A stretch of 64,000 nucleotides of DNA from Anthoceros angustus (lineage: Eukaryota > Plantae > Anthocerotophyta): positions 117,728 to 181,727 of the forward strand of contig VJWM01000265.1 in the NCBI GenBank assembly GCA_010909165.1, written 5' to 3'. The notes below the pieces were generated by a model that saw only the letters and a program-made list of their open reading frames with translations, did no database searches and was not told where the DNA came from. Every line of letters begins with the position of its first letter. Position 1 is the first letter of the stretch. Shown here piece by piece: positions 2,856 to 46,749 of this stretch. The position numbers and the translations under genes were made by a program.

Positions 2856-4929
2856 GTGGTGGGTTTGGGTAGGGTAGCTGGAGAAGGTGGGGTAGTGAGC
2901 GACGGGGTAGGTCCAGAATCCATAGATTCGAACACCTTGACACAAAACTATTCCCTTGGGATCGAATCCTAGGACTATAACGACATAGAGGGTAAATGTG
3001 GCCTCTTTGCGTCTTCGGATGCAAAAACCCATTCCACATTCGGTCTAAAGAGGGACAAGACTGTCCAAGCTGAGTTGAGGTGGGTTTGGAAGCCATAACA
3101 TGGGCTAGTGTAGAAGAAGAGCCTTCCTTCAAATTTCTTGGCCGAATGCAGAATACTAGGGTGTGATCAATAGTGTTCAAATGACGCATAGAGATAATCC
3201 TATTAAGCAAAAAGAAGGAGTCCATTTTAATTTTTTCTTTTTTCTTGTACAATTTAAATTTTTTCCTAACCTTGATTGAAAAAATATTTTTGCAAACTAA
3301 GTTTTTGCGTTGCTGCCATTCATGTATGTTTTTTACATCACACATCCGCACCGCTCTTTTTAGTGGTTCCTCTGCTTCACTATATATTCTCCCGTATCTG
3401 CCTCCCCTCCTTTGTGCTTACTACACACAATGTGGTTGTCTTCTTACCTTTCATCAAGCTTGCATGTTCTAGTTTCTTGTTTTAAGTTAGTTATTTTTTC
3501 TTGTAGTGAGCACATTTGTTACATTATTTGTTTAATTGCTATTGTGTCGAGGTTGGCTATAGTTTTTGTCATGTCAAACTTATAGATGTTGTTGTTTTGT
3601 CGGTCTTTAACAACTTAATGCACAAGGCAGAGTCTGTATTTATTTTTCCTACACAAGCTTCACCGTTAACCCCCCATCATTAGTACATTACTCACTAGGT
3701 TTACTGTCAAACCTGCTACCTATTTTCTATCTTTTTTATTTACAAAGTTGTACTTGCTGTATAGGAACCAACCTGTGCTTTGGGTGTAATCACTTCGCTA
3801 GCAACTTGGCCAGACAGTCTGCATCTTGGCTAGCCATTTTGTATGTGCAGGTCTGCTTCATGTTCTTCTTTGTCATGCCTTGTTAGCTATCTTAGGTTTT
3901 ATGTCTCCATGTTACGTCCTATTCGAAACTTTTGATTGATTGATATTGAGTTTGTTACACGGTGCAAGTCTCTACCTAGGAAAACTTGACCAACCAGTCT
4001 GTATGTGCAAGTCTACCTCATGTTATTCTTTGCTGCTAATAATTAGGTTTCACTTTGTGTATTATATTGTTGCTGGTACATCGCTACTGAGTAATTGTAC
4101 TGTCTTGGTTATGCCAAGTTCTCCTTTTTCACGCGAAGTCTTTACCGAATCAAGGATTCTCTATCTATAAATGTAGTCACTCTAAGTTTGTGTATGGGTT
4201 AACGCCAATTTGTTTAATCTGATTACTAAAGGAAATGTAGAGCTCTTCACCTAGTTAGCTACTGGGTGAATTTTTTTTCTACAACTTGCTTGGTAGTTCT
4301 TGTTAGCAACTTATTTTACCCACATGTTCTGATTTCCACCCACTAGTTTTGGTTATTACTTGTTATTGTTACCCATATGTTCTAATTTCTACCTACGATA
4401 TTTGGGAGTTTACCTATATGAGTGAAAATTTGAACATTCTCTCTTTACTTTCTATCCACTTTTATCCGGTCTAGAGGCGAGCGAGCGGGTCGAACCTCCT
4501 ACCGAGGCAGCGGTTTTACGAACCGATGTTGTTGAAGCACAATATTATCTAGATCCGCATTCCTGTCAATGAAGGATTGTTGGCATATTTATCCTTCGTT
4601 GCTTCAACTCTAGTACCTCCATATCTTCAACCTCCATTTTGTAATCTGCTTTACTTCACATCAAAGTTGCAAATAGAGAGTAAATCTTCAAACTTTTAGA
4701 CCTGGATGTTCGATAACTATGTTTCTTCCATCCTTTGTACAAGATAAACAACAATAAATAATCTCAATCGTACTATTAGCAATTATCGCATAAGTATTAA
4801 CAACACCAAGAAACCAATATGTGCAATTGTACATAAATAAAATCAATGGTCATTGCTAATAAATTAACATGAAAGTACAATGTAACAACAAAAAGAAACT
4901 AAATACTTAGATGTCATGTTCTCAAAGGC

Positions 4930-5475
4930 CGAGGAGAGCGGATTTCTTCCGCACAGGGAGTGCCCATACACCCCCCACAATGGCGTGTCGCTAAGGGCAG
5001 AACTATTTCTGACCAGGAGGAATTAAATCTCTATTGCGAATGTCATCCTAACGGATCCTACTTGGACATCATTTGTGAGCACGTCATCATCAACCCTTCG
5101 GGTTGGGCGACTGAGGGATGCGCGACATCCAAAGTAAACAAGTACACGCCTATGCAGGACGGCCATGCCTTCATCCTACTCGCCATCAAGACCCACGAGG
5201 CCATGAGCAAGGATTTTGGATGGCTCACAAAGGATTGTGCTAAACCCTACCACAGTCGACGAAATGGGGTGGGTCTTCTCCTTTCCTCTGTGGTGGCTTT
5301 CTTTCGACAACGGGTTTCCATCGCCCTGTGGAGGGCGTTGGTCAACGCTGTTTACAAGACAAGCGCAGGAGACACGGCATTAGTGACACCGGTCGTAGGT
5401 AAGCCTTTTCTCAAGTCTGACCACGATATACTTGGGGCGGTTGGTAGTTTCAGGATCGACATTTGGGGGGGCTAG
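4930..5475 (+). mobile_element. 3' fragment of a CRE-clade non-LTR retrotransposon (restriction-like endonuclease domain), frameshifted
   Basis: One frame reads ESGFLPHRE...RAELFLTR...ANVILTDPT. A shifted frame continues KVNKY...AFILLAIKTHE...AFFRQRVSIALWRAL. This matches the RLE signature (RxD..D..K..KY..F.P.A.E..QRxSxALQR). Confidence 0.75.
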
Positions 5476-5868
5476 GCCCCCCCTCTCCCTCCCCCTCCTC
5501 CTCCTGGCCCTTGTCCCTTTAATGGCTTGTTCCTCATCCACTCGGGGTAAATGGTTTTCCCATCCCTTCTTTTTTATAAAGTCTCCATTTCTCGTAATAC
5601 TTATGAAATTAAGTAATAATAAATTAAATACTAAGTAAATATTACAAGCAGGTACAATAGACAAACTAAAACAATTTCAAAACACATACACAAGGGTAGA
5701 CAAACTAGATTTTACTCTAGGATTACACCTTAACTCGGGGTTCGGGTCGGCTTCTTGGGAACCAGGCAGACTATGTAGGTATTTTGGTGTCCCTTTCGGT
5801 CTCCTTTCTTTCCCCTCGTGTTTGTCCTTCACGAAGTCGGCGGCTGCCGGGAGTTGCAGGCGGCAGCG

Positions 5869-6737
<869 letters not shown>

Positions 6738-7100
6738 GGACTACAATTTTGAGTAATTTTGGAGTAGGTTTTTGGGTATCAGCGGAGGACGAATTGCTCT
6801 GTACTTTTTCTGACTGCGGAGTATATATGCAACATTAATTGCATCCTGCAGCCTAAAGGTTGTGCTTTGTCCTCCCGAGAAGGTGATTCTTTTGTCAATG
6901 TTTCTGATCAATGCACAATTATGCTACAGGGCACCTGTATGTTGCTTCGATTGAATTCGTTAGTTTGTCGTCTCAGTTTCCATCACGCAGTAAGCTTAAC
7001 AATTTACATGTATACGAAGAGTTGCCGACCAACTGAACTGCATCAGCCATGCATCCGCAGATTCTCCGTGTTTGCCTTGCTCGCCTGCCAAGACCAGCCC

Positions 7101-9347: not shown

Positions 9348-11294
9348 TTAATGCCGATCCCCACAGGAACAACAACCGTTCACAAAATGGTGAACACGGT
9401 GTGCATCTCTGACTATAATCTGTCTCTGTTCAATCCTTGACATGCTCTTTGTGCCGTTATGGCAGTCATTGCACATGCGAAGATTTTTGGTGACTATCAA
9501 AGTTGTGCCGTCTTTGGTGTTCAGAAGACCATACGCCAGGGCTAGCTTCTCAGCATGTCCACAAAGGGCATCGTCCTTGTCTCTGATAGAAGCCTCCTTC
9601 AGTTCCGGGAAGGAGTTAAGCACTCGGCCGTTTTCCTTCAAGCACAGATTCAAGCTCCTTAGCTTGGAAGAAGTATCGTCCCTTTCCTCCCCCACCACAA
9701 ATGCATGAACCCTGTTATTGACCTCAATCCAGGCCCTTGCCGGCTTCTTGGAGGCACCTGCAACCTTTCTTAGCCTCTCTATCCTTTCTACATCTTGCCA
9801 CTTATTGGCACTGGCATACATACTTGCCAAGAGCACATATGCAGCTGAGTACTGAGGTTCTAGTTGAGTAAGACGGTCAAAACATCGCCTTGCACGGTCA
9901 ATATCACTGAAGCTTTTGCAGGCATTCAGCAAAGATGTCCAACCTACGACCTCGTTTTCAGATGGCAGACTTTGTAACATTGTTTCTGCCTCATGGAGGT
10001 GGCCTGATCGTCCTAGTAGATCAACCATGCAGGCATAGTGATGTCCGGTAGGCACAATGTTGTACTCTTCCACCATCATCTTGAAGTACCCTTGGCCCTC
10101 ATCTACCAGGCCCTCATGACTGCATGCCATGAGGAGACAAACAAAGGTAGCTTCATTGGGCTCCACTCCATTCTCCTGCATCTGCTCAAAAAATTGAATT
10201 GCCATTTGGCCGTCATTATGTTGACAGCAGCCATTTAGCAGAGCATTCCACGTTACGACATTCCTTTTGGGCAACCTGTCAAAGACTTTCCAAGCATCCT
10301 CCAGGCTGCCACATTTGGAGTACATGTCCACAAGGCTGCTGCCAACCACCACATCAGCTTCCAACCCTACTTCCTGAATGTGGGAGTGAAGTTGTCTCCC
10401 CTGGTCCAAGGCTCCAACAGTGCTACATGCTTTCAAAAGGGATACAAATGTGACACGATTAGCATGGATGACACCTTCTTGCTGCATACTTGCGTACAGC
10501 GCAAGTGCTTCTTGACCAAGCCCATGTTGAGCATAACCAGAAATCAATGCGTTCCATGTCACCACATCCTTCATCTGCAGGCTGTCAAACACCTTCCGTG
10601 CATCGTCTAGGCTCCCACATGTAGCATACATGTCCACCAAGCAATTGCTTACAAATATATCTGGCTTAACTACATTACCTAAGATATCAGCGTGCACCTC
10701 TTTCCCTGAGGCTAGATCTGGTGCATTGGCACACGCCTTAAGAACTGCAACGTAGATGTAGTTGTTGGGCTTCACAGTCGACCCGAGCATCTGTCTATAC
10801 AGCTCGATGGCTGTCACAGGCTGTTTATGTTCAGAATGAGCTAAAATAATAGAAAACCACATGTGAGTGCTTGGTGCACTCAGCCTCATAAACACCTGGG
10901 TTGCTTCCTGCAACCTTCCATGAGAAGCATACATGCGCATGATATGGTTGGCCAAGTATGGGTTTGACTCATACCCACATTTCATGGTAACACCATCAAG
11001 ACGCCTTCCACCAATAAGATCTTTCTGTGCAGTGCATCTCCTCAGGATGTAGTAAAGGAGAGAGGCAGGAACATAAGAGCCTTGCTGGACCAGAAGGTCT
11101 AACGTTTCCACACCCTCACTATTCTGAACCTCCTCAACTGATTTGTTGCCTGATCCAACCTTCACAGCCCCTTCACACCTAACTACCCTTGTCGTGCTGT
11201 GCACCCAGTCCGAAAAGCTCTGCTTTCTTTGCGACGTTGCGATGTGTAAATGTCCCGCCAACACCTGCCCAGTTCTGTTCATTGACCACCGCAT
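9348..11294 (-). CDS. PLS-class PPR protein with a DYW:KP-type deaminase-like domain ending in DRH (candidate organellar RNA editing factor)
   Basis: Intronless 648-aa ORF with P-L-S repeats, P2-L2-S2 and E1/E2. KPARAWIE replaces the PG box, followed by CGHAEKLA, MCNDCH and C-terminal CSCGDRH. The true start is uncertain. Confidence 0.93.
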   Translation of the reverse strand: MRWSMNRTGQVLAGHLHIATSQRKQSFSDWVHSTTRVVRCEGAVKVGSGNKSVEEVQNSEGVETLDLLVQQGSYVPASLLYYILRRCTAQKDLIGGRRLDGVTMKCGYESNPYLANHIMRMYASHGRLQEATQVFMRLSAPSTHMWFSIILAHSEHKQPVTAIELYRQMLGSTVKPNNYIYVAVLKACANAPDLASGKEVHADILGNVVKPDIFVSNCLVDMYATCGSLDDARKVFDSLQMKDVVTWNALISGYAQHGLGQEALALYASMQQEGVIHANRVTFVSLLKACSTVGALDQGRQLHSHIQEVGLEADVVVGSSLVDMYSKCGSLEDAWKVFDRLPKRNVVTWNALLNGCCQHNDGQMAIQFFEQMQENGVEPNEATFVCLLMACSHEGLVDEGQGYFKMMVEEYNIVPTGHHYACMVDLLGRSGHLHEAETMLQSLPSENEVVGWTSLLNACKSFSDIDRARRCFDRLTQLEPQYSAAYVLLASMYASANKWQDVERIERLRKVAGASKKPARAWIEVNNRVHAFVVGEERDDTSSKLRSLNLCLKENGRVLNSFPELKEASIRDKDDALCGHAEKLALAYGLLNTKDGTTLIVTKNLRMCNDCHNGTKSMSRIEQRQIIVRDAHRVHHFVNGCCSCGDRH

Positions 11295-22095: not shown

Positions 22096-22142
22096 ATGTT
22101 GTGACGAGAAGTAGCACATTAATCTGTAGCTACGACCGGAGT

Positions 22143-24620
22143 ATGGCCACAGTATGGCAACCGGACCCGTTGTGGATGCAACAACTTGGTGTGTGTACAG
22201 GGATTTCACGAGGAGCTCCCGCTCACCTCATGTTGGGGATTCAACCCCCGGCAAACAAAGCCTCCAGGTGCAGCGGTGTAAGTAGCCCAGGTCATCCGAG
22301 GAAATGTGTGGGTGGGGACGGGTTTTCCAGAGATGGTCGTTGCCAGGAGCAGGAGCACTTGTGGCAACAATTTTTTCTGGACCCTACCATGTGGTGGGAC
22401 AACAGACGAGGTAAGAAGAGCTCCCGTTCGCCTGACTTCCGGCGTAAGGGGTCCGGCGAGGTGCTGTGGTTAAACAACAAGTTTAAGCCAGCTTGGGTTG
22501 ACGAGCAGCTTGTTTCCTTGGATATGAAGATGGGTCATGGTGCCTCTCGTTCCGAGTCCAGCACTCCGGATGAGCCTGAACCTGGCAGGCTTGCAAGTTC
22601 GGTAATGGGTGTCGTTACGGCTGTAACCGTGAGCACATTATGTCAGCAGGGGAAGCTTTCTCAGGCCGTGGGAGCCCTGGAATCTATGGCGCAGACAGGC
22701 TCTGCTATTTCTCAGTCTCTGTTGTACACTGTGGTAAAACTGTGTGCAGCTCAGAAGGATTTGGTTGTGGGGCGACGAGTTCATGATCTTACTGTCAAAC
22801 TTGGGTACGAGTCGAATGCATACTTGGGGAACCATATCCTGCGCATGTATGCATGTGGAGGTAGGCTAGAGGAGGCCATGGATGTGTTCACCAGGGTGGG
22901 CAAACCAGATGCCTTCATGTGGTCTTCCATAATTTCTGCCCATGCTAAGCATGGGAAACCTACTGAGGCCGTACAATTGTACCATAAAATGCGCAGATCA
23001 GGAGTGAAGGCGGATGCTCACGTCTTTGTAGCTGCCCTTCAAGCTTGTGCATTTGCTGCTGACTTGGAATCTGGCAGAAAAGTGCACTGTGATGTGGTGC
23101 AGAGTGGCATTTCTACTGACTTGTTTGTTGGCAACTGCCTGGTGGACATGTATGCAAAATGTGGGGAACTCAAAGATGCACTCCAGGTTTTTGACAGCAT
23201 GACCACCAAGGATGTGGTGACATGGAATGCCCTCATTGCTGGGTACGCAAAATGTGGTGAACTGAAGGATGCACGCCAGGTTTTTGACAGCATGGCCACA
23301 AAGGATGTGGTGACATGGAATGCCCTTATTGCTGGGTATGCAAAATGTGGTGAACTAAAAGATGCACGCCAGATTTTTGACAGCATGAACACAAAGAATG
23401 TGGTCACATGGACTGCCCTGATAGCTGGGTATGCCCAGCAAGGGCTCGGCCAAGAAGCGCTTGTTCTGTATGAGCGAATGGAGCAGGAGGGCCTGATATT
23501 GGCTAACCACGTTACTTTTGCTTGCCTTCTGAAGGCCTGTGCAAGCACTGGTGCCTTACAGAAGGGCAGGCAGCTGCACTTACAGATTGTGGGAAGAGGA
23601 CTGCTGGATGATGTAATGTTGGGCAACTGCCTCGTGGACATGTATGCGAAATGTGGTGAACTGGAAGATGCACGCCAGGTTTTTGACAGGATGAACACGA
23701 AGGATGTGGTGACATGGACTGCCCTGATATCTGGGTATGGTACTTGTGATGAAGGTCACAAGGCTCTAGCTTGTTTTGAGGAGATGTTAGTTGCTGGTAT
23801 TCAGCCTAATGATGCTACTTTTACTTGCCTTCTAGCAGCATGCAGTCATGAGGGACTGGTCCACGAGGGTCGCAAGCACTTTGATTCCATGGCTGAACAG
23901 CATGGCATCAAACCTACTATTGAGCATTACACCTGCATGATTGATCTTCTTGGGCGTGCAGGCCATTTAGATGAAGCAGAGAAGATGCTATTGTCATGTG
24001 AGGGCCAAAATGATGTTGTGGGATTGATAACTTTGTTGAATGCCTGCAAAAGTCACGGGGATATAGAGAGGGCAAGGTGGTGTTTTGAAAACATTGTTAG
24101 GCTGGACCCCCAGCAGGCGCATTCCTATGTGCTCATGGCCAATGCCTACGCAGATGCAGGGAGGTGGACTGATGTAGACCGGATTGAAACACAAAGAAGG
24201 GTGGCAGGAGCTAACAAGAAACCTGCAGTGGCGACCATTGAGGTGAATAAGCGGGTGCATAGGTTTGTGGTGGGAGAAAGGAGAGAGGATATTGTGCTTA
24301 AGGTAGAGAGCATGAATGCACGTGTGAAGCAGGAAGGAGGCCACGTACCTCACACAAAGTTGGTGTTGAAGCCAATGTGTGAGAAGGCAAAGGAAGACTC
24401 GCTTTGTGGGCATGCTGAGAAGCTAGCTCTGGCTTTTGGTCTCTTGAACACTCCGAGTGGGACACCTCTGGTGGTAACTAAGAATCTACGCATGTGCAGT
24501 GACTGCCACAGTTCCACGGAGATCATGTCAAGGCTTGAACAGAGAGACATTATTGTGAGGGATGGGTACCGGGTGCATCGATTTGCAGCTGGTTGTTGCA
24601 GTTGTAAGGGTCGACCGTGA
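22143..24620 (+). CDS. PDF-motif + PLS-class PPR + DYW:KP protein ending in GRP (candidate U-to-C editing factor)
   Basis: Intronless ORF of 825 aa from the ATG at 22143. It has an N-terminal WWDNR...PDF...GEVLWL motif, 13 PLS motifs and E1/E2. The C-terminal domain shows KPAVATIE, CGHAEKLA, MCSDCH and CSCKGRP. Confidence 0.95.
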   Translation: MATVWQPDPLWMQQLGVCTGISRGAPAHLMLGIQPPANKASRCSGVSSPGHPRKCVGGDGFSRDGRCQEQEHLWQQFFLDPTMWWDNRRGKKSSRSPDFRRKGSGEVLWLNNKFKPAWVDEQLVSLDMKMGHGASRSESSTPDEPEPGRLASSVMGVVTAVTVSTLCQQGKLSQAVGALESMAQTGSAISQSLLYTVVKLCAAQKDLVVGRRVHDLTVKLGYESNAYLGNHILRMYACGGRLEEAMDVFTRVGKPDAFMWSSIISAHAKHGKPTEAVQLYHKMRRSGVKADAHVFVAALQACAFAADLESGRKVHCDVVQSGISTDLFVGNCLVDMYAKCGELKDALQVFDSMTTKDVVTWNALIAGYAKCGELKDARQVFDSMATKDVVTWNALIAGYAKCGELKDARQIFDSMNTKNVVTWTALIAGYAQQGLGQEALVLYERMEQEGLILANHVTFACLLKACASTGALQKGRQLHLQIVGRGLLDDVMLGNCLVDMYAKCGELEDARQVFDRMNTKDVVTWTALISGYGTCDEGHKALACFEEMLVAGIQPNDATFTCLLAACSHEGLVHEGRKHFDSMAEQHGIKPTIEHYTCMIDLLGRAGHLDEAEKMLLSCEGQNDVVGLITLLNACKSHGDIERARWCFENIVRLDPQQAHSYVLMANAYADAGRWTDVDRIETQRRVAGANKKPAVATIEVNKRVHRFVVGERREDIVLKVESMNARVKQEGGHVPHTKLVLKPMCEKAKEDSLCGHAEKLALAFGLLNTPSGTPLVVTKNLRMCSDCHSSTEIMSRLEQRDIIVRDGYRVHRFAAGCCSCKGRP

Positions 24621-30130: not shown

Positions 30131-30576
30131 CCACACACGAAAGCCTGCTTACTTTTTTCCGCAGTGCAACCGTGCCCCCCACTTCCGCCCTGCGCAGTGC
30201 TCTCTACCTTGGCCTCAGCTTTCGGCCCGGCCCGGCCCGGTAAGATTATGTGAGACGTGCTTTCGGGTGTTGTTTAGACCACGGCCCGCCCTGTCGGTAG
30301 GCGCGGCTGGCTGCCTGCCTGCCCCTGGTGATGGGAAGCAAGGCAGAGTAGGGGAAGGGAGGGAAGGAAAAGCGAAGGAAGGAAAGGAAAGGAAGAGGAA
30401 GGATAGGTTGGGTTTGCCAGAGCAAGGCAGGGGCGTGCAGCAGGAACATGAAGGGCAGCGGGTCGTCGTGATGGAGATCGAGCAGGCCCTGAAGGGCAGC
30501 GGCAGCACCTGAGGACCCAGGTTGTTTTGCTTGGATTGGAGTGTGTGGGTTTTGGGTGTGGATTTGTCGGGTGAAG

Positions 30577-32502
30577 ATGAGCTCCGATGGATTCCGCGAG
30601 AGAAAGCGGGATGCGGGGACGGAGACGGAGCCGCTGGAGAGGGAGGCAGAGGACGGGCCTCTGCATCCCCGGGGGCCCTCCAGGCACTGGAGGCTGCTGG
30701 ATCTTGTGACGGGAGCGATCATTGCGTCGGTTGTGATCGTGTTCGTGCTCATCTTCACGCCCATGGGGGATTCCACAGCTGCGGCGGGCCGGCGTGCGCT
30801 GGCTCAGCTGGCGTCGGATCCGCAGAACCGGGACAAAATTTTGAGGTGGGTGCAGGAGAAGGGGCTGCCTGTGGAGCCGTGTGATCAGGGGCTCACTGAT
30901 CACATTCCGTGCCACGACCCTAGGCGGGCTGCGCGCTTCAGCAAGGAGAGGAACGAGTACAGGGAGAGGCACTGCCCTCCGCCCAGGGAGAAGCTTGCAT
31001 GCCTCGTTCCTCCCCCCGAGGGGTACCAGATCCCAATCCGGTGGCCGCAGAGCTTGCATGAGGTGTGGTATGCCAACATGCCGCACAAGAAGATCGCGGA
31101 GAAGAAGGGGAATCAGAATTGGATGAGGCTGGAGGGTGAGAAATTCGTGTTTCCAGGGGGAGGCACCATGTTTCCTGATGGGGCTATCAAGTACATTCAG
31201 AAGCTGGCAGGGTGGATCCCGCTGGAGACCGGGGAGATCCGCACGGCGCTCGATGTTGGGTGTGGGGTGGCCTCCTTCGGGGCTTATCTACTGCGGAAGG
31301 AGGTGCTTACTGTGTCCTTCGCACCCAGGGATTCTCACAAGGCTCAGATTCAGTTTGCTCTGGAGAGAGGGATTCCCGCGTTTGTGGGAATGCTGGGCAC
31401 CAAGAGGCTGCCCTTCCCGTCCAGAGCATTCGATCTGGTGCACTGTTCCAGGTGCTTGATCCCCTTCACGGCCTACAATGGCTCCTACCTTCTGGAGATG
31501 GACAGACTGCTACGGCCAGGAGGGTACTTTGTGCTCTCTGGCCCCCCTGTCAAGTGGGCTGGCCAGGAGGCAGAGTGGAATGATTTGCAGATTCTGGCCA
31601 AAGGAATGTGTTACCAAAAGCTGGTGGTGCAGGACAGCACTGCCATCTTCCAGAAGTCATTGAACCATTCCTGCTTTGCCGGCAGACGGAAGCCATATCC
31701 TCCTCTCTGCAGCAAAAGAGAGGACCCTGATGCAGCATGGTACGTTCCTCTCTCGTCGTGTGTCACCAGGTTGCCTCCACTGGAGGACGACGATGAGGCA
31801 TGGGCAGGAGGCAGGATCCCGCGCTGGCCACTCCGGCTGGAGGAACCTCCGAGGAGGATGGTGGAGCTGGCATCCCTCCCGTCTGGAGTGGGCTCTGCTG
31901 CCGGCAGTAGGAGGTCAGATCTTGCCTTTGCTAACAAAGATGGGTCATCTTCACCCACCACCGACTTCAAGGCTGATTCACGGCGATGGAGGCAGCGTGT
32001 GGCGCGGTATGAAGAGATTCTGTTGGGCCAGTTTCATGAGGTAGGTGTGAGGAACGTGCTGGACATGAATGCAGGGTACGGAGGATTTGCAGCGGCCCTG
32101 GTTCCCGAGCCCTTGTGGGTCATGAACGTGGTTCCAATAGGAAGTGACTCGCTACCCGACACGCTACCTGTCATTTACGATCGTGGGCTCATAGGGATGT
32201 ATCACGACTGGTGTGAAGCATTCTCCACCTACCCTCGGACCTACGACCTCATCCATGTCGTGAACGTCAGAGCCTTCACCACGGACCTGAAGAGGTGCAG
32301 CCTGGTGGAGGTCATGCTGGAGATGGACCGCATTTTGAGGCCCGAGGGAACAGTTATATTTAGGGACGGGCCCAAGATGTTGGAGAGCATCGCCAAACTC
32401 TCCAAGGCAATCAGATGGGACACAGCGCTCTTTGACCCTGAAACCAGCTCTGGAGGGAACAAGAGACTGCTGGTGGCGAAGAAACGGTTTTGGAAGGCTT
32501 AG
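30577..32502 (+). CDS. QUA3: Golgi SAM-dependent (pectin) methyltransferase of the PMT13/QUASIMODO3 type (DUF248), intronless
   Basis: N-terminal WRLLDLVT..TM..FTPMGDSTAAAGR, then IPCHDPRR, FPGGGTMFP, ALDVGCGVASFG, FAPRDSHKAQIQFALERG, RNVLDMNAGYGGFAA and YHDWCEAFSTYPRTYDLIH. It closely resembles Arabidopsis PMT13 as I recall it. Confidence 0.88.
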   Translation: MSSDGFRERKRDAGTETEPLEREAEDGPLHPRGPSRHWRLLDLVTGAIIASVVIVFVLIFTPMGDSTAAAGRRALAQLASDPQNRDKILRWVQEKGLPVEPCDQGLTDHIPCHDPRRAARFSKERNEYRERHCPPPREKLACLVPPPEGYQIPIRWPQSLHEVWYANMPHKKIAEKKGNQNWMRLEGEKFVFPGGGTMFPDGAIKYIQKLAGWIPLETGEIRTALDVGCGVASFGAYLLRKEVLTVSFAPRDSHKAQIQFALERGIPAFVGMLGTKRLPFPSRAFDLVHCSRCLIPFTAYNGSYLLEMDRLLRPGGYFVLSGPPVKWAGQEAEWNDLQILAKGMCYQKLVVQDSTAIFQKSLNHSCFAGRRKPYPPLCSKREDPDAAWYVPLSSCVTRLPPLEDDDEAWAGGRIPRWPLRLEEPPRRMVELASLPSGVGSAAGSRRSDLAFANKDGSSSPTTDFKADSRRWRQRVARYEEILLGQFHEVGVRNVLDMNAGYGGFAAALVPEPLWVMNVVPIGSDSLPDTLPVIYDRGLIGMYHDWCEAFSTYPRTYDLIHVVNVRAFTTDLKRCSLVEVMLEMDRILRPEGTVIFRDGPKMLESIAKLSKAIRWDTALFDPETSSGGNKRLLVAKKRFWKA

Positions 32503-42619: not shown

Positions 42620-45526
42620 TCACGGTCGACCCTGACAACTACAATTACCAGCTGCGAATCGATGCACACGATACCCATCCCTTACAACAATGTCTCTCTT
42701 TTCAACCCTTGACATTACCTCGGTGGAACTGTGGCAGTCGCTGCACATGCGCAGGTTCTTGGTTACCAGCAGAGGTGTGCCACTCGGAGTGTTCAAAAGG
42801 CCATAAGCCAGAGCTAGCTTCTCGGCATGCCCACAAAGCAAATCTTCCTTTTCCTTCTCGCTCAGTGGCTTCAACACCAGCTTTGTGTCTGGTACGTGGC
42901 CCCCTTCCTGCTTCAGACGTGCATTTGTGCTCTCTACCTTCAGGGCGATATCATCTCTGTTTTCTCCCACCACAAATGTATGTACCTGCTTCATCACCTC
43001 GATGCCTGCGACTGCAGGTTTCTTGTTAGCTCCTGCTAGTATTCTCTGTATTTGAATCCTCTCTACATCCTCCCACCTACCTGCATCTGCATAGGTATTG
43101 GCCATGAGCACGTATGCGGAGGCACCCTGAGGGTCCAGTCTAACAAGACTTTCAAAACACCGCCTCGCCCTTCCTATGTCCCCGTGGATTTTGCAGGAAT
43201 TAAGCAAAGATGTCAACCCCACAACATTGCTTTGGCTTTCACATGATAACAGCATGTTCTGTGCCTCAAGTAAACGGCCTGTACGCCCGAAAAGATCAAT
43301 CATGCAATTGTAATGCTCAACAGTAGGTTTGATGCCATGCCGTTCAACCATGGAATCGAAGTACTTGCGACCCTCGTTCACCAGTCCCTCGTGACTGCAT
43401 GCTGCTAAAAGACAAGTAAAAGTAACATCATTGGGCTGAATTCCGGCAGCTAACATCTCCTCGAAACAAGCTAGAGCGTTGTGACCATTGTCACAGGAAC
43501 CGCATCCAGCTATTAGCGCATTCCAAGTCACCACATTCTTCGTGGCCAGGCTGTCAAAGACCGCCCATGCATCTTCCAGTTCACCACATTTAGCATACAT
43601 GTCCACCAGACCGGTGCCCAGCACTATGTTATCTAACTCCCCTCTTTCCACAATTTGTGAGTGCAGCTGCCTGCCCATCTGTAGGGCACCAGCGCTTGCA
43701 CATGCCTTCAGGAGGCAAGCAAAAGTAAGCTGGTCAGCGACAACCATACCCTGCTGCACCATTTGTCCATACAGAACAAGTGACTCATGACCCAGCTCAT
43801 GAATTGCATACCCAGCAATCAGGGCTGTCCACGTCACTACAGTTTTTGTGGTCAAGCTGTCAAACACCCTGCGAGCATCTTCCAGTTCGCCACATTTTGC
43901 ATACATGTCCACCAAGCAGTTGCCCACAAGTACGTCACCTAGCAGACCTCTATCCACAATCTTTGCATGCAGCTGCCTGCCCTCCTGTATGGAACGAGCG
44001 CTCGCACAGGCCTTCAGAAGACAGGCAAAAGTAAAATGGTCAGCCAAAATCAGGCCCTCGTGCTCCATTTTTCCATACAGAAGGAGAGCGTCTTGACTGA
44101 GCCCATGATTAGCATACCCAGCAATCAGAGCCGTCCATGTAACCACATTTTTTGTGGCCAAGCTGTCAAAAACTGCACGCGCATCTTCCAGTTCACCGCA
44201 TTTTGCATACATGTCCACCAGGGAGGTGCCCACCAGTATGTCATCTAGCAGTCCTCCTTTGACAATCTGTGAGTGCAGCTGCCTGCCCTTCTGTAAGGCA
44301 CCAGCGCTTGCACAGGCCTTCAGGAGGCAAGCGAAAGTGACCTGGTCAGCCAAAATCAAGCCCTCCTGCTCCATTTCTCCATGCAGAACAAGCGCCTCTT
44401 CATTGTACCCATGATTTGCATACCCAGCAATCAGGGCCGTCCATGTCACAACATTTTTTGTGGCCAAGCTGTCAAAGACCCGGCGTGCCTCTCCCAGTTC
44501 GCCACATTTTGCATACATGTCCACGACGCAGGTGCCAACAAACAAATCAGGAGCAATGCCACTGTGCAACATATCAGAGTGAACTATTCTCCCAGATTCC
44601 AAATCAGCCGCAAATGCACAAGCTTGAATCGCAGCTAGAAAGACGTGAGCATCCGCCTTCACCCCATCGCAACGCACCTTGAGGTACAGTTGTATGGCCT
44701 CCTTGGGTTTCCCATGTTTGTTGTGTGCCGAGATTATGGAAGACCACATGAAGGCGTCTGGTTTTTGCACCCTGGTGAACACATCCATGGCCTCCTGTAG
44801 CATACCTCCACCTGCATACATGCGCAAAATATGGTTTCCCATGTATGTATTTGACTCGTACCCAAGTTGGACGGCGAGATCATGTACTCGTCGCCCAACA
44901 ACCATATCCTTCTTAGCTGCACACAGTTTTAGCACAGAACAGAACAGAGCCTGAGAAATAGGACTGCCTGCCTCCGCGCGAGATTCCAGAACTTCAACGG
45001 CCTCAGTGAGTTTCCCCTGCTCGCAAAACGTGCTCACGGTTACAGCCGATACGACATCCATACCCGATTCTGCAACCCTGCCAAGCTCAGGCATATCCGG
45101 GGAGCTCGACTTGGAAAGAGAGGCACCATGACTTATCTGCATATCCAGGGAAACGAGCTGCTCATCCACCCAAGCTGGCTTGCAGAAACTGTTTAACCAA
45201 AGGACCTCGCCAGACCCCTTATGCCGGAAGTCAGGCGAACGGGAGCTCTTCTTATCTAGCCTGTTATCCCACCACATGGTCGGGTCGAAAAAAAAATGCT
45301 GCCACAAGAACTCCTGCTCCTGGCGACGCACGTCGCTGGAAAACCTTTCCCCAGCCATGCATTTCCTCGGAAGTGCTGGGCTCCTTACACTGCTGCAACT
45401 AAAGGCTTGGTTGTTTGCCAGCGGTTGACTCCCAGAACTGAGGTGAGAGGGAGGTCCTCGGAAAACTCCTTTACAACCACCAATTTGTTCGGTCCACAAC
45501 GGATCTGGTTGCCACGCAGTGGCCAT
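42620..45526 (-). CDS. PDF-motif + PLS-class PPR + DYW:KP protein ending in GRP; paralog of 22143-24620
   Basis: Intronless ORF of 968 aa from the ATG at 45526 (MATAWQPDPLW). It has the WWDNR...PDFRHKGSGEVLWL motif and 17 PLS motifs. The C-terminal domain shows KPAVAGIE, CGHAEKLA, MCSDCH and CSCQGRP. Confidence 0.95.
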   Translation of the reverse strand: MATAWQPDPLWTEQIGGCKGVFRGPPSHLSSGSQPLANNQAFSCSSVRSPALPRKCMAGERFSSDVRRQEQEFLWQHFFFDPTMWWDNRLDKKSSRSPDFRHKGSGEVLWLNSFCKPAWVDEQLVSLDMQISHGASLSKSSSPDMPELGRVAESGMDVVSAVTVSTFCEQGKLTEAVEVLESRAEAGSPISQALFCSVLKLCAAKKDMVVGRRVHDLAVQLGYESNTYMGNHILRMYAGGGMLQEAMDVFTRVQKPDAFMWSSIISAHNKHGKPKEAIQLYLKVRCDGVKADAHVFLAAIQACAFAADLESGRIVHSDMLHSGIAPDLFVGTCVVDMYAKCGELGEARRVFDSLATKNVVTWTALIAGYANHGYNEEALVLHGEMEQEGLILADQVTFACLLKACASAGALQKGRQLHSQIVKGGLLDDILVGTSLVDMYAKCGELEDARAVFDSLATKNVVTWTALIAGYANHGLSQDALLLYGKMEHEGLILADHFTFACLLKACASARSIQEGRQLHAKIVDRGLLGDVLVGNCLVDMYAKCGELEDARRVFDSLTTKTVVTWTALIAGYAIHELGHESLVLYGQMVQQGMVVADQLTFACLLKACASAGALQMGRQLHSQIVERGELDNIVLGTGLVDMYAKCGELEDAWAVFDSLATKNVVTWNALIAGCGSCDNGHNALACFEEMLAAGIQPNDVTFTCLLAACSHEGLVNEGRKYFDSMVERHGIKPTVEHYNCMIDLFGRTGRLLEAQNMLLSCESQSNVVGLTSLLNSCKIHGDIGRARRCFESLVRLDPQGASAYVLMANTYADAGRWEDVERIQIQRILAGANKKPAVAGIEVMKQVHTFVVGENRDDIALKVESTNARLKQEGGHVPDTKLVLKPLSEKEKEDLLCGHAEKLALAYGLLNTPSGTPLLVTKNLRMCSDCHSSTEVMSRVEKRDIVVRDGYRVHRFAAGNCSCQGRP

Positions 45527-46749
45527 CCTACAGGCACCGCTTTGTCGGAGAACATAATCGAAGAACTTCAAAATCCGCAAACGCCTGGAGGAAGACGCGT
45601 AAGGCGAATGTTTTCTGTTCTCCGTCGTCCTCCCGAGGATCTTGCCTTCTCCATCGCTCTCCAACTAGGTACGGTTGGGACAGGGTTCCTTTCACCTTTC
45701 TTGGAGCCTGGACAAGCCATGAATGTTCAAGCATACGAAGACCGGGCATTAAGGGGATTGTGGGATACGATGTGTAACATAAGTGGAGTCAGAACCCTCG
45801 CTGAAGGTTTCTCGCCCGAGGTTGTTTTGATTTATTTTCAAAATACCAAATTTAAAAAAATCAAGGGGATTGTGTGCCAACTCGGGGAAGTGTGGACTTT
45901 TACAAGTTACGAGGCAGTAGGGATGCCTTAGTCACCCCTATATATTAGTTTTCTATTCAATATGCAATGGCAATCCATTCGGAGCAAGCCAAGCGCTTGT
46001 CCTCAGCCCACCTCTCCGGTGATTACTACCAATGTATCCACCTATCCTGTGATTAGTACCAATGGATTTCCTCAACGATCGTACAACAGCTCTCGGTTGT
46101 GTGCACAGATGTGTGTGTAGGGCCAGCTAATGTGGAGGACGCTGATGCTTGTCTTGGTCTCTTGCTTTGTGCAGCTGTAGCATAGCCCACGACGTTGTGA
46201 GAAATTGTACCATATGCCTGAGAGATTGACTGTAGAATAGCCCATGAGCATGTGAGCACATGTCCTTTTGTATTGAGTCCTCACAAACGGATAGCACATT
46301 CATCAAGCGCGCGTGTTTGAGATGCATATATTATAGGCCATTTACCATACCTTGAGTAAGAGCATGTGTATCAAATATAAATGTCTCGAGGTAGGCACTA
46401 ACCGTTATGTGAACATGAGTGTGTAACTGAGTGACAATTCCATTAAAGTAGAGCGATGGCAATTTAATGGGACCTCGCTTCGTGACAAGGAGGACCGCAT
46501 TCCAATGACTTCAATATTGTTGCTCAAAGATTTTAAATTGTCTGCCTCTCTATCCATCGTGATCAGGCTCCACTTACCCCAAGCTCCCTAGATTAGCATC
46601 GTAGAAGAAAATGGTAGTTTTCTCCCAACCCTTGTCTTTCCTCTATTGTTCTTGTGGCTTGCTAGTTGAACCCCTTAGAATCAAGCCAAGCCCTCTTATG
46701 CCGTTTGGGCTTGCCAATGCATCTCGCCTTATTCAAGCTTTTTCCTGGG

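Follow-up and report, generated by a model that had tools for sequence, protein, structure and literature searches.

Gene A of the hornwort Anthoceros angustus encodes a pentatricopeptide repeat (PPR) protein of the RNA-editing type that carries, at its N-terminus, what is almost certainly a genuine PDF domain of the kind found in OSB proteins, homologous in sequence and in predicted fold. The gene lies at 22143–24620 (+) in a 64,000-nt stretch of contig VJWM01000265.1 (the window; all coordinates below are window positions). It is an intact, intronless coding sequence of 825 aa plus a stop codon, in which the PDF domain is followed by a PLS-type PPR array, an E motif and a DYW:KP domain of the GRP variant; this structure was read from the open frame, Pfam matches and an alignment with a paralogue, gene B, located in the same window. 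In plant organelle RNA editing, site recognition and catalysis are carried out by PLS-class PPR proteins, which also serve as the chassis of programmable RNA base editors. On sequence grounds, the gene A PDF is one of an old group of PDF domains carried by PPR proteins; the group is represented in a liverwort, in mosses, lycophytes and ferns and in hornwort-type genomes, irrespective of the C-terminal class of the protein. A comparison of genes A and B shows purifying selection to be strongest in the PDF. The most likely role of the domain, proposed tentatively and by analogy, would be that of an auxiliary single-strand binder aiding the editing factor.

Identity of the N-terminal domain

The 51 residues that a sequence-only reading of this DNA had assigned to a PDF motif are encoded, letter for letter, by 22359–22511 (+); the opposite strand has a stop there. 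The domain encloses this segment and extends over 22344–22532 (+), as delimited by the profile envelope. It is predicted to consist of a helix, two short strands and a second helix. The motif, taken as 59 aa, includes nine aromatic residues and has a net charge of +2.

A word-indexed search with the PDF region, which is insensitive for this motif, returned a single relative, P0001, a Logan-assembled PPR protein with three N-terminal copies. The seed profile was built from the gene A motif and the three motifs of P0001. Among 1.84 billion representative proteins, it matched 1078 at E ≤ 0.001, including 478 at E ≤ 1e-10. A typical match is a protein of 250–500 aa with the motif close to the C-terminus. 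The OSB-like matches that were checked bear an SSB/OB domain (P0127, 8.5e-20; P0141, 3.5e-17), with PF00436 present in OSB matches. Among the matches are, under their NCBI names, OSB3 of Amborella, with four motifs (E 8.5e-65), and an OSB1-like protein of Drosera (E 3.5e-20), each of which has an SSB/OB domain.

A second hidden Markov model (HMM), built to avoid circularity, comprised 23 PDF motifs from nine OB-fold-bearing OSB-type proteins only. In the six-frame translation of the window, this OSB-only HMM matched the gene A PDF over positions 3–62 of 64 with 66.2 bits (independent E 5e-22), against a best score of 11.3 bits for 2000 composition-preserving shuffles of the motif. In an alignment of 131 sequences, 7 columns are invariant and 7 nearly so, and the domain keeps every one of them; each of the signature residues tested (W, P, WWDNR, K, PDF, LW and P.WV) is present. 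The consensus patterns of PPR-borne and other PDFs are nearly identical.

The AlphaFold2 model based on the 131-sequence alignment has a mean predicted local distance difference test (pLDDT) value of 93.2 and a predicted template modelling score of 0.80. A Foldseek search of the Swiss-Prot models gave significant matches only for Arabidopsis OSB1, OSB2, OSB3 and OSB4, each on its PDF region (E 5.7e-6 to 7.3e-4; template modelling (TM) score by query 0.69–0.86), and the next match had E 8.9. The best fold match is to OSB1 residues 183–246, with a TM score of 0.86 between models that are predicted on both sides. Matches among the AlphaFold Database clusters are likewise OSB-named proteins. The OSB-type identity claimed by the sequence-only reading is upheld by both the profile and the fold comparison.

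Other resources yielded little. Pfam contains no model for the PDF domain, and a scan of the 839-aa open frame found no family in the first 200 aa. A sequence search of solved structures with the PDF gave only insignificant matches to the CP29 N-terminus; Foldseek against the PDB with the PDF model returned nothing at E ≤ 0.001; and the VIA wide structure search with the same model reached a best Z of 4.1. An ESM Atlas feature search with the PDF returned phage proteins at 0.65, which is under the useful level.

Gene A and the OSB proteins share the same domain of about 60 aa, with the signature LW..FF..P..WWDNR..K...PDF.HK....LWL...P.WV kept and with 35–43% identity between the gene A PDF and OSB PDFs. 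The architectures differ. In OSB proteins, which act on organelle DNA, an SSB-like OB-fold domain precedes one to four PDFs at the C-terminus; in gene A, a single PDF stands at the N-terminus, ahead of the PPR repeats and the deaminase-like domain. The 839-aa frame gave no Pfam match to an SSB or OB-fold family; the gene A product, being without an OB fold, is therefore not an OSB protein.

Architecture of the gene A product

The uninterrupted open frame around gene A spans 22101–24620 (+) and comprises 839 aa. The ATG at 22143 is the likely start, because gene B shares the N-terminus MATxWQPDPLW and the similarity of the two genes stops about 20 nt upstream of this ATG. Assembled contigs of the gene family part from gene A exactly at 22143 and 24622. 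The upstream consensus of these contigs, compared with 22100–22142 (+), resembles the 5′ flank of gene B (45527–45560 (−)) and is unlike that of gene A, which may have lost the usual 5′ untranslated or promoter-proximal sequence of the family. An upstream exon was considered for gene A and dropped, the loose ends at 22143 being paralogue flanks that resemble the 5′ flank of gene B.

A model of the 330-aa N-terminal part, obtained by AlphaFold2 with 15 PDF-PPR sequences, has pLDDT values of 33–39 for residues 1–60 and about 90 for residues ~61–133; residues 133–151 are disordered and PPR helices with values above 90 begin at residue 152. The PDF is thus predicted to be an independently folding module of about 70 aa, located between a disordered leader of about 60 aa and a flexible linker of about 19 aa. 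The leader (residues 1–60, 22143–22322 (+)) is a possible organelle targeting peptide, judging from its predicted disorder, relaxed selection and composition. It had been described as S/R-rich and transit-peptide-like, but ‘S/R-rich’ is loose, since the first 69 aa contain G 10, P 7, S 6 and R 5, with a net charge of +3. The linker between the PDF and the first PPR helix (residues 133–151, 22539–22595 (+)) has a pLDDT of about 43 and the lowest read-family depth in the gene.

The PPR array and the E motif occupy 22596–24218 (+). The Pfam families PPR, PPR_1, PPR_2 and PPR_3 match the gene A frame, as do E_motif (2.6e-15, residues 652–714 of the open frame) and DYW_deaminase (9.4e-31). Judged by these matches, the product has the composition of a PLS-class PPR editing factor, with a PLS array, then an E motif, then a DYW deaminase-like domain. 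The array contains an in-frame tandem repeat at 23150–23434 (+), found by Tandem Repeats Finder (93 bp × 3.1 copies, 90% matches, score 458). It is translated into three consecutive 31-aa hybrid units, each joining the end of a P1 motif to the start of an L1 motif, with the pattern ...AKCGELKDA.QVFDSM.TKDVVTWNALIAGY.... Gene B has ordinary P1-L1-S1 triplets and no such repeat at the matching place. The repeat may reflect a recent slippage or unequal-crossover event that changed the RNA-reading register.

The deaminase-like domain, 133 aa in length, is encoded by 24219–24617 (+). It opens with KPAVATIEV, that is, with KP in place of the PG box. The DYW:KP class is defined by a Lys-Pro pair where the N-terminal box of a DYW domain otherwise has Pro-Gly (PMC11845758); its further marks are an HxE...CxxC zinc site, Ala (or Cys) for the Ser of HSE and a conserved Lys88 (PMC9478123, PMC11845758); this lysine is essential for the U-to-C activity of designer KP proteins (PMC9478123, PMC11845758). 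Hornwort DYW:KP variants have been named GRP and DRH after their terminal residues (PMC9478123). Genes A and B both have HAE at domain positions 65–67, K88 (in VTKNLRMC) and CSDC at 93–96. Gene A ends in KGRP, gene B in QGRP and a third gene of the window, gene C, in DRH. By sequence, genes A and B carry every mark of the DYW:KP class found in the literature, in its GRP variant.

The hornwort GRP-variant DYW:KP PPR proteins described previously (Gerke 2020; Gutmann 2020) have in common with gene A the PLS array, the E motif and the 133-aa domain with its KP start, HAE, Lys88, CxxC and GRP end. The designer U-to-C editors KP2 and KP3 were derived from a hornwort GRP C-terminal consensus, their P2-to-DYW region being combined with a synthetic PLS tract (PMC9478123, PMC11845758). 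U-to-C activity was assayed for designer KP proteins only, not for natural ones (PMC11845758). An N-terminal PDF is absent from the descriptions of the KP2 and KP3 designs and of GRP proteins in the literature searched; the founding GRP papers may mention one.

Selection and expression

Ratios of nonsynonymous to synonymous substitution (dN/dS), calculated for gene A against gene B by the Nei–Gojobori method, differ along the protein. The PDF has the lowest value of all segments, 0.146, based on 59 codons of two sequences and hence on small counts; it is followed by the DYW domain (0.227), the first PPRs (0.349), the leader (residues 1–69; 0.60) and the linker (residues 129–160; 1.01). Synonymous divergence (dS) between the two genes is about 0.4–0.6.

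The expression data consist of contigs from three Logan runs, whose RNA status is guessed, with 3,473 to 7,073 family contigs per run. Their coverage runs from 22049 to about 24950 and takes in the copy-specific linker (depth 300–500) and some of the 3′ flank, while depth is zero over the 1.4 kb upstream of gene A and past about 25270 downstream. Coverage of gene A between empty flanks argues against DNA carry-over, and transcription of the gene A copy is no more than suggested.

Contig joints across gene A include none that are intron-like and none that splice out the PDF. The likely ATG precedes the domain. Removal of the PDF by splicing and a position upstream of the start, two fates that the sequence-only reading had named as fatal to its proposal, are thus not indicated by these data. 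A joint at 22406>22458 occurs in three runs (X1–X3); it has CG..GC ends with GGT inserted, amounts to a net loss of 16 codons and removes the basic loop and the P-D-F tripeptide. Because of its ends and the three inserted letters it is not an intron, and it probably represents a family member with a deleted PDF core.

These data bear on the possibility that gene A arose recently as a non-functional member of a large family in decay, its PDF being inherited without a present role. Such an origin would accord with the unusual 93-bp triplication in the PPR array, with a 5′ flank unlike the usual upstream sequence of the family, with the poor representation of GRP genes in transcriptomes (PMC9478123) and with the lack of reads on gene A in a raw-read RNA run. 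Nevertheless, frames of 825 and 968 codons (genes A and B) are both open at a dS of about 0.4, the PDF and the DYW domain have dN/dS values of 0.15 and 0.23, and all catalytic marks of gene A are intact. Contigs also match the copy-specific linker and 3′ flank at ≥97% identity, next to neighbouring DNA of zero depth. A mere passenger status of the PDF is accordingly considered very improbable.

Distribution and age of the PDF–PLS fusion

A full-length search with gene A retrieved 119 further PLS proteins, which were scanned with the OSB-only HMM; this sample is biased, as the search words came from the first 500 residues of the gene A product. The PDF is present in 22 of the 119. Thirteen of these 22 lack a DYW domain. 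Four are canonical, ending in DYW or YYW and having a PG-like box and HSE (two from Diphasiastrum, P0224 and P0301; two from the liverwort Calypogeia, P0240 and P0236), and two are Sphagnum-type DYW proteins (P0249, P0215). The remaining three are of the KP type, two GRP-type (P0193, P0294) and one DRH-type (P0256). The search of representative proteins and a second, region-based search had returned PDF-PLS proteins ending in an E motif without DYW from the lycophyte Diphasiastrum, the ferns Adiantum and Ceratopteris, the moss Sphagnum and several transcriptome assemblies. None of the 15 Cryptomeria or Ginkgo (seed-plant) PLS matches has a PDF.

The sequence-only reading had connected the PDF-PPR-DYW:KP chimera with candidate U-to-C editing, and had proposed counting how often PDF occurs with DYW:KP or with canonical DYW domains. 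That connection does not survive the count in this biased sample: as judged from protein sequences, the fusion is plainly not tied to DYW:KP or to U-to-C editing, the PDF occurring also on E-only and canonical DYW PLS proteins and being absent from gene C. The notion that the PDF marks the GRP variant, prompted by its presence in both GRP genes of the window and its absence from the DRH gene, was dropped as well, since the DRH-ending Logan protein P0256 has a PDF. Two GRP-ending proteins, P0200 and P0201, are without PDF and possibly truncated.

Individual members of the group, such as Diphasiastrum KAJ7568880 and KAJ7570437, Adiantum KAI5076972 and the Sphagnum and Calypogeia models, resemble gene A in having an N-terminal PDF, a short linker and a PLS array. 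The seedless-plant proteins carry one to three PDFs, gene A one. Unlike gene A, most of them lack a DYW domain and terminate in a short E motif, and some have the canonical PG box, HSE and DYW. They have been deposited as hypothetical or generic PPR proteins. Three tandem N-terminal PDFs are present in the Diphasiastrum PLS proteins P0188, P0189 and P0231, which mirrors the one-to-four C-terminal expansion in seed-plant OSB proteins.

In a tree of 192 PDF domains (69 alignment columns), 47 of the 49 PPR-borne PDFs form one cluster. Two short fragments also belong to it, and one of these has the beginning of a PPR motif at its end. The PPR label changes four times on this tree, against 43.8 times with shuffled labels. 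The PDFs of genes A and B group with GRP-type PDFs, with a Shimodaira–Hasegawa-like approximate likelihood-ratio support of 89. A tree forcing all PPR-borne PDFs together is not rejected by the approximately unbiased test (p-AU 0.889), and the sequences are compatible with one old PDF-PPR fusion.

PDF domains also occur in other settings. Arrays of 9–13 repeats are found among P0002–P0010 and P0038, for example in a 1160-aa protein of Kingdonia uniflora; P0003, the sole array protein scanned with Pfam, gave weak sub-threshold matches and no supported domain stretch. In a single Coptis chinensis gene model, which could be a gene-model fusion, a PDF stands beside a kinesin motor domain. The PDF seems to be more mobile as a module than the OSB literature suggests.

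Possible role of the PDF domain

In PPR–RNA complexes, the N-terminal repeat of the PPR tract is located at the 5′ end of the target. Because the N-to-C direction of the tract corresponds to the 5′-to-3′ direction of the RNA, a PDF tethered to the first PPR would be positioned just upstream (5′) of the recognised sequence. There it could act as a sequence-independent binder of single-stranded nucleic acid, which would give the editing enzyme extra affinity or keep the editing site unfolded. The PDF would then be a built-in helper in plants that are without the MORF/RIP helpers of seed plants. Confidence in this role falls a little short of even, although no other role considered is more likely.

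MORF/RIP proteins, the editing helpers of seed plants, offer a functional analogy only, as accessory elements raising the RNA binding of PLS-PPR proteins. Unlike the PDF, which is fused in cis at the N-terminus, they are proteins in their own right; their fold is unrelated, and they make contact with L motifs. The occurrence of MORF proteins in seed plants may be complementary to that of PDF-PLS proteins in seedless plants, the PDF side of this comparison coming from a limited sample (0 of 15 seed-plant matches).

The ligand of the PDF is the point at which a different mechanism enters. The PDF could bind single-stranded DNA as in OSB proteins and park the editor on the nucleoid or on the non-template strand, so that nascent transcripts are edited. 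Reviews citing Zaegel 2006 state that OSB1 has a PDF motif able by itself to bind single-stranded DNA (PMC6963530, PMC6451138), and report a preference of OSB1 and OSB2 for single-stranded DNA over double-stranded DNA or RNA (PMC4166229). PPR-borne and OSB-borne PDFs hardly differ in their conserved residues, so no shift of ligand is visible in them. On the other hand, one PDF on a flexible tether would provide weak anchoring only, though Diphasiastrum proteins have up to three copies, and the separate old cluster of PPR-borne PDFs has left ample time for a change of ligand. Weighed by this analogy with OSB proteins, tethering to DNA appears an unlikely alternative.

The domain might, alternatively, contact proteins rather than nucleic acid, joining PPR factors to each other, to OSB proteins or to other partners. 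The PDF settings outside OSB and PPR proteins, namely the 9–13-repeat arrays, which have no significant other Pfam family where checked, and the Coptis kinesin-domain protein, are in keeping with this, as is the tetrameric state reported for OSB2 (PMC6963530). Against it stand the sole experimentally reported property of the PDF, single-stranded DNA binding, and the nature of the kinesin case, a single gene model and possible annotation fusion. A protein-contact role appears decidedly unlikely.

Several points weigh against the auxiliary-binder role itself. The reported preference of OSB1 and OSB2 for single-stranded DNA favours DNA tethering over RNA binding. If the transit peptide is cleaved after the PDF, the mature protein would be left without it. 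None of the three structure searches found a resembling solved structure, so no binding surface can be deduced. The selection signal is subject to the small counts given above. As for expression, all aligned pieces are ≤100 nt and the family is very large, so that gene A is not separable from its paralogues with certainty; the single raw-read RNA run has zero reads on gene A, and GRP genes are under-represented in transcriptomes (PMC9478123). Taken together, the domain identity, architecture, old group and selection with the proposed helper mechanism form a reading that is, on balance, slightly favoured.

A bolder version would make the PDF an ancestral cis-helper of land-plant PLS editors, a non-specific single-strand clamp. 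It would have arisen once in early land plants, been kept in hornworts, liverworts, mosses, lycophytes and ferns, and been lost in seed plants, with MORF/RIP proteins replacing it. Only a minor probability is assigned to this scenario.

Other genes in the window

Gene B (42620–45526 (−); open frame 42620–45664) is an intact paralogue with the same PDF-PLS-E-DYW:KP (GRP) structure, 968 aa in length from the shared ATG at 45526. It is 59–62% identical to gene A along its length and has an identical set of DYW:KP marks. Its PDF domain (envelope 45137–45322 (−)) scores 65.2 bits with the OSB-only HMM and 73.7 bits with another PDF HMM, and is 80% identical to that of gene A. Gene C (9348–11294 (−)) has an open frame of 648 aa with Pfam PPR, E and DYW matches; it is an intact, PDF-less PLS-E-DYW:KP gene and represents the DRH variant. 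It has the KP box, HAE and K88, ends in GDRH and has a short N-terminus. A six-frame scan of the 64 kb revealed two PDFs (genes A and B), three DYW domains and no more. Genes A, B and C, all three PPR genes of the window, are intronless and open.

A further intronless open frame of 653 aa, at 30541–32502 (+), matches Pfam Methyltransf_29 over its full length (plant PMT/QUA-type putative methyltransferase, E 1.5e-203). A G+C-rich open reading frame of 270 aa overlaps it on the opposite strand and is probably spurious.

Significance

The PDF-PPR fusion is apparently undescribed. The full-text literature search yielded no publication that connects PDF or OSB with PPR proteins, although key founding papers may contain an earlier mention, and it found no functional study of the architecture, in agreement with the sequence-only reading. 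A 2026 survey of OSB evolution retained only proteins with both an OB fold and a PDF (PMC13393729), and this requirement filtered out PDF-PPR proteins. The literature descriptions found treat the N-terminus of PLS proteins solely as a targeting peptide.

PDF-PLS proteins, present in several lineages of seedless plants, extend the range known for the PDF domain, and genes A and B provide intact natural full-length sequences of the PDF-PLS-DYW:KP type. They raise the question of whether the PDF adds affinity, tethers the enzyme to DNA or recruits partners, the three candidate roles that the sequence-only reading had put forward. If the ancestral-helper scenario is true, designer PPR editors, whether C-to-U or U-to-C, should work better with a PDF added. 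Placed ahead of the RNA-reading repeats, a conserved, selected and, by prediction, independently folded relative of single-stranded DNA binders would represent a functional component of plant organelle RNA editors that has so far gone unrecognised.

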